Counted from the first letter of the stretch, positions 48,644-54,871 are shown. The stretch: DNA of 64,000 nucleotides from Ostrea edulis (GCF_947568905.1 NC_079172.1:8742001-8806000), one strand, 5' to 3'. Numbers and translations: made by a program. Notes: generated from the letters alone by a model not told the origin.

Positions 48644-48726
48644 CTATTTCTTGGTATCCCGCGGACATTTACATCTCTCGTGGACGGGGACATCCTTCAG
48701 GGCTTTCTCAATGTGGTTCCCACAAC
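48644..48726 (-). CDS. 43-aa Cys/His-rich microprotein, exon 2 of 2
   Basis: ccttttgttctcgctacag|GT TGT GGG AAC CAC ... TAG = (G)CGNHIEKALKDVPVHERCKCPRDTKK*. The phase matches exon 1, giving a 6096-bp intron. Confidence 0.85.
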
Positions 48727-49851
48727 CTGTAGCGAGAACAAAAGGATACCAGACTATATAATTATGTAATTATTAAAAAAAATCAAGTCGACAAAGTCAC
48801 ACTAAATTCAATAACAAAAGCGGAATCCCCTGGAAACTTGATAATCTTTTCAAAATTTATCTCCTTTACCTCGTCACTTTAACAATTTTATGACAATCTA
48901 AATAAAAAAGACCAAAAACTCAATAGTAACCCAGACTTTTCTGTGAGGTGTCGTGACGGTAAGTGTAATTAAAATTCGATCCAAAATACACTGAAAATCT
49001 TTAAAGCACGGAATTTCTGAAATTGTCCTCGGTGATCTTGACTGTTTATCACTGACTTTGACTGTTTACAATCAACCCAGTTTGATAGAGCGAAAACACA
49101 AACAAGCAGAAAATATATACTCCGTATTTACACCACAACTTAAAAATTGCGGGTAATAGATATATATTATAAGCTGAAAGAACTTGGAATAATTCAGCGG
49201 ATAACTCATCAACCATTTTTTTTTAACTTCAAAAGGACGACTCTTCAGCCACATCAAAGTAGCTTGTTCGATTGTCTATTCATATCTTTAAATAGCTGCC
49301 ATGCATACACCTACGCGTTACAGAGTATTTATCCAATTAACAGAGCGGAGGAGACTGAATTTTAAAAAAAAAAGTTTTAATAACATGTCGCGGACAAAAA
49401 AAAAAAAAAAAAAAAAAGAATAGAAAGATTTTGATGGATACACTTCCAAAGAACATTATTAAAATCCCGGTGTCCTACAGGGAGACATAATTAGGGATAA
49501 TGTCGCACCTGGAACATTAAGGTTCTTTGATGAATTATATATACCTTATGGCTCATTTCCTGCGTCGAAATCTATGATCTGACAAAAACGTGTATTTCTC
49601 ACAGCCCAACCGAAACACGTGACAAAAAGAGAGAATTTGGTATTCTATTTTCCTCGTGAATTTCGTATTCAATTTTCCTCGTGTTTGCTATAATACTTGA
49701 TCGAATTTAAAAATAAAGTTCAAAGTTAATTGGCTATATCAAATTTTGCAATTTTTTTTTCTCTTTTGAGTGTGTATGCATCAAGATTTATGTAGCGATT
49801 TTTTCAGGCGACTACGAACTCGTACATTAGAATTTTACATGTCGATACAAC

Positions 49852-49907
<56 letters not shown>

Positions 49908-51733
49908 ATGTATCAGTCTTCCAAATCATTACACAAGGTCATTATATACTTACCAGTATTTCTGTATGGTAAATTATGCATACTCAAGGTAACAAATATG
50001 GTTATATACACACTGTAAGTTCTGCAGATCCAGAACATTTTTAAAAGAATTAGGATATATAACAAAGATGACAAATTATTTCTCTCAATTTTCGGTATCC
50101 TTACATAAAATGGCTATTTTCCAAGCAGTTCCTCTTTAATGATTTAAAAAAAAATCTAACTCAGGTTGGGACAAACTTGATATGAATTCATGCCACAAAT
50201 TATCTCTCTGGTATACATGGTATCCGTAAGTGATAAAGAAATGAAAATTGTCCACGCAAAGCTGTGTTCAAAGTTTTCTGAAAGATAAAAGTTTGCAAAA
50301 ATTTCTATTTTATCTAAATAAGAATTGGGAATGTAAATATGAGGCAAAATAACAGCCTTTCTCAGTTTCTCGGTTTTAAAACTTTAAATACAGACTTTTT
50401 AAAAGTATTCTTTTATTTTATAAAAGATACCATTTGTGTTTCTTTCAGAAACATGAAGAGCCAGCTTTGGACAAACAAAATTTCACATATGCGCCCTTGG
50501 TATAAATTATGAAGTTTTTTTCTAAGCTCACGTGCGCATTGTTTTCTAAAGGTGACGTCACTCTGGTTCTTTACGTAACAACTAACCGATACAAAATCCA
50601 CTTTTAAAATTTTCTAAACAAAAGCACGAACGTCGATTTTAGTGGACAAATAGAGCTTCATCAAACATAACATAAATATTTCGTAAAGACGTCGCGCACG
50701 GTACTGGTGTTACTTTCATACGTGCATTAGAAAATGTTTCCGCTATGTTTACACAGTTGTATATTTTGTGGATTATTAAAGTCTTATACATCAATGGCAA
50801 GGAAAATATATAAATAATGATAATAGCTTATATAAAATATAATTTACACGCATTTCATTAGCAATAAATACACGCAGATGTCGTCATTTTTCGTTGTCCC
50901 ACGTTACATGAAATACGCATACGCTTTATCCACAGATTAATAAAATGATTGATTTTGTCCCAAATAACGTAAGAATTGGTGTATGATTGTGACGTCCTTA
51001 TCTAAAAACCATAAACCAATTACTTTAAACATTTAGTTCATAGAATTGATATAGCGACCTTAAAAATGGCAAAGACAGTGCCTGTCAGTGGTGTCCCGTG
51101 TTTGTAGATAGACTGCAAATGCAAATCATCATGACCAGTAGCACGCCTAATACAGGGGGAAGTTGACTATCCTAGCTTGTTACATTTATAATGTACATGT
51201 ATCGTAGAGCACAATGTATACCAGTATTATAAAATTCTGAGTATATCCATGAAGTAGATTGATTTTATCGGTGTCCAGTGAAATGTCCTTATTCTACAAA
51301 TACCGCGCTTTTTAAACAATTCTACCATTTTATGTCTTATTTCTAAGCATTATTCCAACGCGAATATTTTAATGAATATAACTTACAGAAAGTACATAAA
51401 ATTTACTATATAGAATATACAACATTTCATTTTATCCCGCGTCCATTTAGGAAAACGAAAAGATACTTAATAAATGTCCCATGTGATTTTGTCGCGCAAT
51501 GACGCGACGTCAATGTACACAACCTACGTCTAGCTAAAACGTAAAATGTTGCTTTTATTATTTTTGAATGATCTAAATTAAAATGATTTTTAAAAATAGT
51601 ATACAAGGTATTTAAGCTATAGCATGTGTATCTCATAGATATGTTTTACTCTAGATCTGGTACATATACTTTAATTGACTTTATCAAATGACAATTGTAC
51701 AGACTACATTTTGTTGCATGTACTATTGTATGT

Positions 51734-51823
51734 CATCGTCGCAAACCACGGGTTATTGTTTCATTCTATTTCACAAACGTTTGTGAAATAGAATGAAACA
51801 ATAACCCGTGGTTTGCGACGATG
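51734..51823. mobile_element. Perfect 90-bp palindrome MITE (CATCGTCGCA family)
   Basis: 45-bp arms with no spacer and no mismatch; TSD TATTGTATGT/TACTGTATGT. Confidence 0.9.
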
Positions 51824-53034
51824 TACTGTATGTATGCATATAAAAATTCAGCATTGAACAGATACACTTACGGTGTGTAAAACGTTGCAATATTATACAA
51901 ATCTTGATTTATATACGAAACTCTTTAATCATATTCGATAATCTTGTTATTCATATATGAGAAAATTTTAATTATATTCGATAATCTTAATATTTATATG
52001 CGAAAATTTTGATTTATATTCGATAATCTTGTTATTTATTTACATTTGGTAACCTTGTTATTTATATTCGATAATTATATAAATCTCGATTTATATTCCA
52101 TAATATTTGATTCGTATTTGATAATGTTGATGTACACATGCTAGATGTACGCATAGATTTAGTCATTATTGATTGTAGGTGAAATGCATAATTTCAAAAA
52201 TTGATAAAAGAATTAGCTTCATTGACCATGACCTGACCTCGGATGTCTTAAATTTAACTAGAGGAGCTACTCTGCTAAAATTAAACTTTAATAAATATAC
52301 AGCACTACCAGCCGTGAGACATTTGGCCTGAATTGAATAGTTGACCTTGCCCTAATATGCTGAATAAACCCAGTAGCTATGTCGAAGCTTGGGTGACTGC
52401 CCTGTAATCCCCCATAGGCTGCTTAGCTAGCTGGATTAACAAGAGTGATACAAATTTGAATATTTATTAATCGTAATCAGAAACAGGGTGCAAATTGACA
52501 TATATGGCGGAAAGGGTCGCGTGCAATTTTTTGTGGGGAACTGGGGAGGCGGCCAGTTTGACTACCATCGTAGGGGCAACACAGGGGGCCCTATGTGGAC
52601 ATAGGTGCCTGGACCTGAACGGGTGGTCACGTTCTAAGGGGGAAGAGATCTCTGCGCATCTCAGCTGTCTCCTGCGTGTTACCTGGTTCAAAGAGCAAGT
52701 ACAGAGCAAACTGTGGACCCTCCTACAGTTTCCAACATGCACCAGCCTGTAGCATTCCCTAGGAGGTGGATGTGAGCACAGGCACCAGAACGGTGGATAT
52801 ATATAGCGTGTTAGATCTTATGTACCTCCCCCCCCCCCCTTCCAATGAATGAAAGATATATACATAAGTCACATATAAAAATGAATTGAATGTCAAAATC
52901 TTGTTAGAGTATCAGTGACGTGTTGAACAACCTCACTGTTGTATTTAGGACCCAGGTGATCTCTGGCGGGTGTGAGCGATTGCCCCTGGAATATTTCGCC
53001 CACATGCGTTGGTACTCCAGAAGAGTAGAGGAAG

Positions 53035-53077
<43 letters not shown>

Positions 53078-54822
53078 GATTAAAATAAAAAAAATTCGTA
53101 TATGAATATCAAGATTTCTCACATATAAATAAAAATTTCCGTCCGCATATAGATATCAAGATTATCGAATACAAATCAAGATTTCCGCATATGAATAACA
53201 ATATCATTAGATCAAAAGTTCAACACCTGACAAAAAAATCTAAAGTCACACGGTTTTCACGAGACCACCCCTTCAAAACTAAATATGATATATATTGAAA
53301 CTAACCGATTCGCAAGTAAAACATACGAGTATAAATAACACTCTGTATACCTTTTCTACTGTTTATTCAGAAATGAAAGTGAATATTAAAACGTTAAAAT
53401 GTAATATTATTTGGAAGTTTTTAACTCTCACTTTAACTCACCGTGGTTATTATTATTATTCATTTATAAAGCGCAAAACTACATATACTTTCTATGCGCT
53501 GGTTGTTGTTTTTTTTTTCACTAGAGCGTGATCGATGTAGATCGATGACAGAAACGTACGGGAGTTTTTAACCCCCCCCCCCCTCCTCCCCCTTCCGTGT
53601 TTGGCATTAATAAAAAGTATTAAAGAGAGCAATGATTATTAAACATAGAGACTTGAGCAAGTCTATATATATCCTAGAAAAAACCAAAACTGATTTTTTT
53701 TACTGTGTTCAAATTTTTCAGAATTCATAAGAATTGCAAGCCTTATTTCATGGGATGGTTACCTGTAAAATGCGAAACGAAATCGAAAGGAAACGAAATC
53801 TACCGAAGCAAAACGAAACCTACCGAAACGGGTACCCTTATTTCATACGACATGCCTGCTGTTGTAGGCACGGTGAAATATATACAGTACGTATACTTTG
53901 GAGTATTTCTAAGAATTCATAATTTTTATGAATGTACACTATACACGTACAAAGATTTATTTTCAATTTTTAAACATTAAATCATGCATGTGCTTTAGTT
54001 ATGATATTACAGCTTAGAGATAATGAATTTGTTTAAAATGTGACGTTGCTTTCGTGATTATATTTTGCCACAATTTATGACGTTATAAGTGTAACGTAAA
54101 GTGACACCAGTACCGTGCGCTTAGTGAAAACATCTTAGTTCTGAAACCTTATCAAAATGTTGGAGTGAGTTTTAAAAAAAATAAAGAATAATAAATTTGT
54201 GAGTGAAAAAAAGCCAACCGTTTAGTGAAAATTATGTTAAATTTGTCTGCAATGAATTATTTACTTCAATACAATGTTTCTGCCTTTATTTCTACATGTA
54301 TATTTATAAACATCAGGATTTCTTTTGTCAAAATTACAATAAAACATGGCAACATGTAGGCCTGTGCCTCTTAATGTCAAAGGGGATTTTTATGAACTGT
54401 AAATCTGTTTTAGTCATTCTGGTAACACTCCGCAGATATGACTTTGGCAGTTAATGCCCCTTTTGGGGTTTTACGGAGGGTATAAAGGGTACTTGTAGTA
54501 TTTCCCCGTCATCCTGGCTATCCTGGGTGGGGATGACAATTCATTGCCCCGAGAATAGAATACAACTAAGGTACGTAAGTATTTAGAGAATTTATCGATA
54601 CAACATTTATCATTGTTATACGTGTATATCCTGTGACAGATAAGACACAACCCGAGATAAAAACAGGTAGGATTTGTAAAACGACATCCATATAATGTAT
54701 AAATAATACCCGGCTGTAATAAAAGTCGAGGATCCTGTATAGCTAGAATTTGATAAGTTATTCTCATAAAAATATCGGTGTATTTAGTTAATTAGTATAC
54801 ACAAATTTACAAAAGTTCTTAC

Positions 54823-54871
54823 CTCCCCAAGTGGGTTTTCCGCAATCTTCACATTTCGTTTTGAAGCACAT
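54823..54871 (-). CDS. 43-aa Cys/His-rich microprotein, exon 1 of 2
   Basis: acaatcATG TGC TTC AAA ACG AAA TGT GAA GAT TGC GGA AAA CCC ACT TGG GGA G|gtaaga = MCFKTKCEDCGKPTWG, with a phase-1 donor. Confidence 0.85.

Follow-up and report, generated by a model that had tools for sequence, protein, structure and literature searches.

Among the described systems close to the gene reported here are the cst-like sulfide-stress operons of bacteria, in which CstR-, BigR- or SqrR-type regulators control genes for coenzyme A (CoA) persulfide reductase (CoAPR), CstB, rhodanese and TauE (PMC9405070). In Enterococcus faecalis, the fusion of CoA disulfide reductase and rhodanese (CoADR-rhodanese) is a CoA persulfide reductase under the regulation of CstR (PMC9405070). 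The gene itself lies on the minus strand of a 64,000-nucleotide (nt) stretch from Ostrea edulis (GCF_947568905.1, NC_079172.1:8742001-8806000; "the window" denotes this whole stretch, and positions count from its first letter) and codes for a protein of 43 amino acids (aa) with six Cys. It had been proposed in an earlier reading made from the sequence alone (the sequence-only reading), as a spliced Cys/His microprotein head-to-head with an ANK-cGLR gene.

That the gene is conserved, genuine and expressed we regard as practically certain. Its 43-aa product belongs to an ancient, real and uncurated family, a new one in the wide field of small metal-binding Cys/His domains. The best explanation, which we hold with rather more confidence than doubt, is that the family comprises metal-thiolate mini-proteins tied to thiol/persulfide stress.

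Gene model and transcript

The two coding exons join in frame, their 49 and 83 nt adding up to 132 nt, and the translation of the joined exons is exactly the 43-aa peptide proposed earlier. The start codon, ATG at 54871 on the minus strand, carries an A at -3 (acaatcATG); exon 1 ends in ...TGGGGAG|gtaaga at 54823, and exon 2, which is preceded by a pyrimidine-rich tract and ctacag, is entered at 48726 (...ttctcgctacag|GTTGTGGG) and reads GT TGT GGG AAC CAC ... AAG AAA TAG, with the stop codon TAG at 48646-48644. Intron 1 is of phase 1 and splits the codon of Gly17. The GT-AG sites, the phase, the A at -3 and the product of the sequence-only reading were all reproduced from sequence and translation; the window contains 0 N bases.

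Homology marks the same two exons. When three independent homologs were compared with the whole window by tblastn, matches appeared only at these exons, colinear and abutting at Gly17 (for the homolog P0001, E 8e-13 at exon 2 and E 4e-5 at exon 1), and no second copy of the gene was found anywhere in the window with the peptide and the three homologs as queries. P0001 is an uninterrupted 159-bp open reading frame (ORF) on a 2.46-Mb eukaryote-like metagenome contig, and because it is uninterrupted the splice is independently validated.

Four small RNA-seq runs labelled 'mollusc metagenome', all from one study, were available for the region; the DNA runs used for comparison come from another. 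Contigs of runs X1, X3, X8 and X5 were aligned on 48200-54199, the exon-2 side; exon 1 lies outside this interval and the two sides of its junction are 6098 nt apart, so that the exon 1-exon 2 join cannot show as a listed joint in any run. The RNA contigs of X1 (284 nt) and X3 (248 nt) align with 0 mismatches, cover 48644-48728 together with 48311-48481 (X1) or 48322-48481 (X3), and both skip the 162 nt in between, which begin with GT and end with AG on the minus strand. The DNA run X5 has 0 contigs at this joint, and the skip is thus attributed to splicing rather than to a retrocopy. Past 48728, the X1 contig continues for 26 further letters; read in reverse complement (GAAGATTGCGGAAAACCCACTTGGGG), they correspond to the end of exon 1 and occur once in the window, at 54825-54850; the alignment extends to 48728 because the letters AG match both sides of the junction. 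Since this overhang is the end of exon 1 and unique in the window, the exon 1-exon 2 junction is confirmed: the join of 54823 to 48726, for which a check by RNA-seq had been suggested, is carried by an RNA contig.

With RNA contigs and homologs over both exons, the claim of a genuine, spliced and conserved small protein was borne out. The two-exon model holds for both coding exons and fails for the exon total, as the RNA contigs contain an extra exon in the 3' untranslated region (3'UTR) behind a 162-nt intron; the transcript has three or more exons. This second intron starts right behind the TAG, so that the distance from the stop to the last exon junction is 0 nt, an unusual placement for a 3'UTR intron, which should not provoke nonsense-mediated decay. 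An ATTAAA at 48330-48325 precedes by 14 nt the end of the X1 contig at 48311, a position that would fit a poly(A) site. The unlabelled run X8 behaves differently: 0.41 of the sampled words of 48250-48760 are listed for it, yet no X8 contig lies on 48200-48800; its contigs cover intronic repeats only, and the mismatch with the word listing may reflect a search filter.

Table 1. Coordinates of the gene and of features within it (positions in the window).
Feature	Coordinates	Strand	Evidence
Exon 1, coding part, Met1 to first base of the Gly17 codon	54823..54871	-	sequence; translation; homolog match E 4e-5; 26 nt in X1 RNA contig
Intron 1, 6096 nt, GT..AG, phase 1, 33% GC	48727..54822	-	gtaaga donor, ctacag acceptor; no RNA contig within 48727-54199
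Exon 2, from the second base of the Gly17 codon through Lys43 and TAG	48644..48726	-	X1 and X3 RNA contigs, 0 mismatches; homologs E 8e-13
Intron 2, 162 nt, GT..AG, 3'UTR intron directly behind the stop codon	48482..48643	-	joint 48481|48644 in X1 and X3, absent from DNA run X5
Exon 3, 3'UTR	48311..48481	-	contig pieces 48311-48481 (X1) and 48322-48481 (X3); X1 ends at 48311
Likely polyadenylation signal ATTAAA	48325..48330	-	pattern search, inferred; 14 nt upstream of contig end
High-copy repeat in the upstream half of intron 1, not in the mRNA	50600..54199		DNA run X5 word depth

The GC content of the coding sequence is 48%, as against that of intron 1 in Table 1. Within the repeat of this intron, the X5 word depth amounts to 3,600-34,000, compared with about 40 in single-copy flanks, and its numerous internal joints and inverted pieces hint at fragments of transposons nested in one another. 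Directly 3' of the gene, at 46653-48250 (minus strand), follows a long CT-rich low-complexity tract with a TTG-started ORF of 486 codons; Pfam recognises nothing in this ORF, and in all probability it is simple sequence rather than a gene.

Family breadth and metal-ligand pattern

The window protein belongs to a widespread family, to which it is similar in full length over both coding exons. A word-indexed search returned three proteins (P0001-P0003; 52-75 aa, 72-77% identity, E 3e-14 to 2e-11), each spanning both exons. A profile of these three matched 837 of 1.84 billion cluster representatives at E<=1e-3, and at E<=1e-10 it matched 70. Almost all of these proteins have a length of 40-145 aa and carry the domain at the N-terminus or close to it; every source name given for members is 'hypothetical' or 'uncharacterized'. 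The named eukaryotic members comprise the oyster Magallana gigas (K1QLD1), the leech Helobdella robusta, the rotifers Adineta, Brachionus, Didymodactylos and Rotaria, the choanoflagellate Salpingoeca rosetta and the fungi Dissophora, Cladochytrium and Tilletiaria; clusters of the ESM Atlas add Ascomycota, Mucoromycota and possibly Streptophyta. In prokaryotes, a scan of one genome per species gave at least 536 confirmed loci which, among the matches listed, belong mainly to Actinomycetota and also to Acidobacteriota, Myxococcota, Gemmatimonadota and others. Bacterial members are 37-68 aa long, and the shortest stop exactly at R-C-x-C. Over its 37-aa core, the window protein is identical to bacterial members at a median of 59% and a maximum of 68% of positions, and to K1QLD1 at 84%.

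The relatives in fungi and bacteria that the sequence-only reading had mentioned exist, and its proposed check of taxonomic range leads from bacteria and fungi to a choanoflagellate, rotifers, a leech and an oyster. Its description of the gene as hidden does not hold in full, for the oyster ortholog already has a UniProt entry (K1QLD1).

The position of intron 1 is shared as well. On L082, a second and unrelated eukaryotic contig, the gene is likewise split within this Gly codon by a GT..AG intron of phase 1 (G|gtaaag...tgtag|GG, compared with G|gtaaga...ctacag|GT in the window), and P0007 and P0078, both read-through gene calls, show their interruption at this Gly residue too; the window gene, with its phase-1 intron in the Gly17 codon, conforms to the eukaryotic members. 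The existing gene calls for the L082 member and for K1QLD1 look wrong. For L082, the JGI call (152-589) runs through the intron and the stop, takes TGA as a sense codon and arrives at 145 aa rather than about 40; K1QLD1 (P0006) has a 91-residue extension past the conserved core, which we think is a gene-model error.

Several observations concern other parts of family members. In many bacterial proteins (L003-L080) the C-terminus, about 10-15 residues past the last Cys, forms a conserved amphipathic tail, G(F/L)LxRL(L/F)GR, which is missing from the eukaryotic members and could be a membrane- or partner-binding peptide. Two 90%-identity clusters each hold one very long member, namely a 583-aa reverse-transcriptase-domain protein (P0159) and a protein of 421 aa (P0203), probably owing to a clustering artefact or local overlap. 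A search for fusions with the longer members P0004 and P0048 (region 1-41) gave close relatives only, and Pfam recovered from ten long family members only two doubtful fragments, MurB_C and CMD.

Three sets of sequences define the ligand pattern: an alignment (A2) of 106 sequences, a larger pattern set of 263 and a full-pattern set of 115. In A2, C7, C10, G17, C18, G19, H21 and C35 are invariant, and conservation reaches 90% or more for M1, C2, R34 and C37; all of these residues, with exact spacing, are found in the window's 43-aa product. The A2 consensus is MCxxVxCxxCGKPTWxGCGxHIEQALxxVPxxxRCxC and the family pattern M-C-x4-C-x2-C-G-K-P-T-W-x-G-C-G-x-H-(I/V)-E-x2-L-x2-V-P-x3-R-C-x-C, in which the spacing from the His to C35 is 13 in 115 of the 115 full-pattern sequences. 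The first Cys follows right behind the Met in 106 of these 115, and behind Met or Val in 240 of the 263. Because the Met-Cys junction is kept even where the gene caller adds an upstream extension, it is taken as the true N-terminus, and the window protein likewise begins with MC. At the last ligand position, 234 members have C-x-C, 19 have C-x-G-H and 4 have C-x-G-W-xn-C; Cys is thus exchanged only for His at this site (234 versus 19), the other ligands being invariant, and an interchange of this kind is typical of residues that bind metal, not of those that pair in disulfides.

The Cys/His pattern of the sequence-only reading held up in its six Cys and His21 with invariant spacing, and the replacement of Cys37 by His in 19 family members agrees with its suggestion of metal ligands; His32, which it had also counted, is not conserved. 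No hydrophobic N-terminal stretch can be read from the sequence, in keeping with the stated lack of a signal peptide. In an AlphaFold2 model (computed from A2 with the oyster ortholog as first row; residues 1-43, mean pLDDT 83), strands 3-6 and 13-16 and a helix 22-25 are arranged in a treble-clef-like manner: the C-x2-C knuckle sits on the hairpin and C18-x2-H21 enters the helix. Judging from this pattern, the conserved Cys and His probably bind metal, zinc being plausible. The domain would then fold around the bound metal as follows: C7 and C10 of the hairpin knuckle, with C18 and H21 at the start of the short helix, may form one tetrahedral site, and C2, C35 and C37 may provide a second site or a shared ligand. 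With seven ligands from side chains, two tetrahedral sites could be filled if they share one thiolate or use the free N-terminal amine. An Fe-S site of three Cys and one His would be an alternative to zinc.

Bacterial neighbourhoods and possible roles

Gene neighbourhoods were compared in the best 80 species loci of the at least 536, retrieved with an alignment of eight bacterial sequences that is biased to Actinomycetota. Rhodanese linkage was determined with tblastn domain probes, and neighbour families were counted with Pfam over the two ORFs next to the mini-gene in either direction. A rhodanese domain lies within 3 kb of the mini-gene in 39 of the 80 loci, the other half being without, and all 91 matches are on the strand of the mini-gene; in the outer zone of 3-6 kb, which serves as internal control, only two loci have their sole rhodanese match. 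Pfam assigns the flanking ORFs beside the mini-gene to two kinds of fusion: Pyr_redox_2, Pyr_redox_dim and Rhodanese, that is, CoADR-rhodanese, or Lactamase_B and Rhodanese, the metallo-beta-lactamase (MBL) fusions that we take to be persulfide dioxygenases of the CstB type. By the tblastn probes, the CoADR type is present at 23 loci and the MBL type at 14. A rhodanese neighbour is found within 150 bp in 25 of the 80 loci. The mini-gene may stand upstream or downstream of either enzyme, and the gene order varies among the lineages in which the linkage recurs (Microbacteriaceae, Propionibacteriaceae, Actinomycetaceae, Pseudonocardiaceae, Acidimicrobiales, Vicinamibacteria and Myxococcales).

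In the census of the linked loci, the leading families are Rhodanese (27), Pyr_redox_2 (19), Trns_repr_metal (the CsoR/CstR family; 13), TauE, Thioredoxin and Lactamase_B (5 each); the remaining loci give Thioredoxin (5), Trns_repr_metal (3), YgaP-like_TM (2) and OsmC (2), then a diverse tail. Neighbours of the CsoR/CstR family thus number 16 over both censuses. Examples of operons, with RHD for the rhodanese domain and Trx for thioredoxin, run from an ArsR-type helix-turn-helix gene through the mini-gene to CoADR-RHD in Vicinamibacteria; mini-gene, MBL-RHD, TauE in Agrococcus; Trx, mini-gene, MBL-RHD, TauE in Microbacterium and Leucobacter; and Trx, CoADR-RHD, mini-gene in Tessaracoccus.

The thiol/persulfide role is inferred from these operons, since about half of the sampled bacterial homologs share them with genes for CoADR-rhodanese or MBL-rhodanese, CstR/ArsR-type regulators, TauE and thioredoxin. 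The protein may act in the handling of reactive-sulfur stress in one of the following manners: (i) as a redox-sensitive metal-thiolate switch, (ii) as an acceptor of sulfane sulfur, or (iii) as a small partner of sulfurtransferases or rhodanese-fusion enzymes and of thioredoxin. The bivalve protein would be cytosolic and employ the same chemistry, and its position by the ANK-cGLR gene would be coincidental. On the strength of gene context, a role in sulfur/thiol stress is plausible for the bacterial proteins, with the balance just short of even; for the bivalve protein the same role is a tentative extrapolation.

Several points weigh against this view. Unrelated genes surround the mini-gene in about half of the bacterial loci, for example Aminotran_5, Cyclase and Amidohydrolase around P0013, and the 80 loci are the best matches to a query biased to Actinomycetota and phylogenetically non-independent. 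Operon context is not transferable with certainty to a eukaryote. Searches of the literature, including one by accession number, returned no description of the family and no experiment on any member, which agrees with the sequence-only reading that no function is assigned. As to the protein itself, 23 of the 263 members are without Cys2, which is thus not strictly required. Finally, the exon 1-exon 2 junction rests on one short X1 contig overhang, to which X3 adds 3 letters beyond the junction side.

A stronger form of the proposal would make the whole family dedicated to H2S/persulfide homeostasis, as sulfane-sulfur acceptor or sensor together with rhodanese-fusion enzymes and thioredoxin. 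Retention in sediment-dwelling, sulfide-exposed invertebrates such as bivalves would then be expected, and the processed N-terminal Cys would contribute to the active site or the metal site and might, in animals, also be a target of N-terminal cysteine oxidation. We consider this form improbable. The same low weight is given to a structural zinc mini-domain that serves as protein or nucleic-acid adaptor without a specific tie to sulfur metabolism, the operon linkage in Actinomycetota being lineage-specific hitch-hiking. The diverse neighbours at half of the bacterial loci are consistent with such an adaptor, as are weak matches to C1 domains and zinc-ribbon-like proteins, and the conserved surface-type residues K12, W15, E23 and R34 would suit an interaction surface; yet the rhodanese-fusion linkage recurs in several orders and phyla, with differing gene orders and partners and a constant strand, which is hard to explain by hitch-hiking.

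Slightly less probable is an Fe-S mini-protein, in which C7, C10, C18 and H21 would ligate a labile [2Fe-2S] cluster in the manner of CDGSH proteins such as mitoNEET, as a redox or cluster-transfer module. The invariant set of three Cys and one His with C-G-x-H would resemble CDGSH; genes with redox and sulfur functions lie nearby, and one locus lies next to a class-V aminotransferase, a family that includes cysteine desulfurases. Against this, Pfam gives no match to zf-CDGSH or to any Fe-S family at E<=10, the spacing is unlike that of CDGSH and no fold match was obtained, and three further conserved Cys would be left unaccounted for.

The neighbour of the gene in the window is an ORF at 57441-60614 with ankyrin repeats and Mab-21 nucleotidyltransferase and Mab-21_C domains. 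It is divergent in orientation, and its start lies 2570 bp from the ATG of the mini-gene, as measured, in agreement with the 2.57 kb given earlier. The further suggestion of shared regulation or a functional tie found no support. A partner or co-regulated accessory of the ANK-cGLR gene, expressed from a bidirectional promoter in innate immune signalling, would have in its favour the head-to-head arrangement alone, and the distance is long for a shared promoter. The family has 0 matches in a PADLOC scan, no nucleotidyltransferase or CBASS family is among the 25 most frequent neighbour families in either locus set, and the family is far more widespread than the ANK-Mab-21 architecture. As nothing beyond one head-to-head arrangement in the window links the two genes, the accessory reading was rejected and is very improbable; the genes around the bacterial homologs suggest sulfur/thiol metabolism instead. 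That the ORF arose by chance, or is a fragment of a pseudogene or part of a non-coding transcript, might be supposed from its very short length, the 6.1-kb intron and the lack of peptide evidence; this was rejected on conservation and transcription and has a negligible likelihood, given that both exons are 72-84% identical to independent proteins with a conserved intron position, spliced RNA is present, and the ORF is intact with all invariant residues.

With the thiol/persulfide reading as the preferred one, the family matters in several respects. A 37-aa domain at about 60% identity between Actinomycetota and a bivalve, with no curated family, structure or published function, is an annotation gap, and most gene callers skip or mis-extend such genes, as seems to have happened with the oyster entry and two metagenome calls. 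The gene in the window illustrates that a microprotein of two coding exons, split by a 6-kb repeat-filled intron, is recoverable via homology and RNA contigs. The bacterial operon context furnishes a testable hypothesis, namely action in sulfide/persulfide stress beside CoA persulfide reductase, persulfide dioxygenase-rhodanese, TauE and thioredoxin. Should this hold, the family would be a missing small component for the field of reactive sulfur species and a candidate marker of sulfide or redox stress in molluscs.

Comparison with known families and folds

Searches against curated families and solved structures gave chance-level results. Pfam and NCBIfam scans of the peptide had 0 matches at E<=10. 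In the PDB, the best sequence matches of the peptide were C1 domains of protein kinase C (PKC) at E about 2-4; a profile of 106 sequences reached E 0.13 with a cerato-platanin-like protein, and a chain of RNA polymerase II (1qyp) was a further chance-level match. With best E values of 0.13-2 from phmmer and hmmsearch, the PDB offered no match to a solved fold, nor was there a family-profile match to zinc-finger or zinc-ribbon families. Foldseek against the PDB reached E 3.7 at best, and a wide VIA-align comparison with 48,161 chains found no Z>=2. A shape search of the ESM Atlas led back to the family itself, in three 'hypothetical' clusters from actinobacteria (TM 0.79-0.84). Its fourth row is a cluster of 109 proteins named 'Thioredoxin domain-containing' (representative of 101 aa; TM 0.72 by query, 41 residues, rmsd 1.8 A), which could be a fusion or a substructure match only.

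Among described kinds of small Cys/His domains, three invite comparison. Treble-clef and zinc-knuckle fingers, such as the N-terminal zinc domain of thioredoxin-2 and the C1 domain of PKC, share with the mini-protein the C-x2-C knuckle on a hairpin, the C-x2-H at the start of a helix and the small size; they have no significant similarity to it in sequence or fold, and the mini-protein has three extra conserved Cys, including residue 2. CDGSH domains of the mitoNEET type, whose element is C-D-G-S/A/T-H, bind [2Fe-2S] with three Cys and one His; this set, the Gly-rich C-G-x-H and a possible redox role would be common to both, whereas the spacing differs and Pfam gives no match. Metallothioneins are likewise small and cytosolic, with a Cys-rich metal-thiolate chemistry. 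In contrast to them, Cys makes up only 14% of the mini-protein (6 in 43), Trp15 and His21 are conserved, the spacing is strict from bacteria to animals, and the hairpin and helix are modelled at pLDDT 83; an identity as metallothionein was rejected on Cys content, the aromatic and His residues and the defined structure.

Among the closest relatives with a database entry is UniProt K1QLD1 of Magallana gigas ('Uncharacterized protein', 134 aa), which shares the Met-Cys start, the ligand spacing and the motifs at the core identity given above. The two differ behind the core: K1QLD1 is annotated with its extension, while the window protein ends after Lys43 and its mRNA continues with the 3'UTR intron. 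Helobdella T1FWC7, Salpingoeca F2UMD8 and the protein WP_185744109.1 of Arachnia propionica have the same family features and are likewise without name, curated family or function. Compared with the cst-like sulfide-stress operons, the bivalve gene is without operon context and the mini-protein is not among the described components; about half of its bacterial homologs, in turn, lie inside operons of this type, on the same strand and often at a distance of 150 bp or less.

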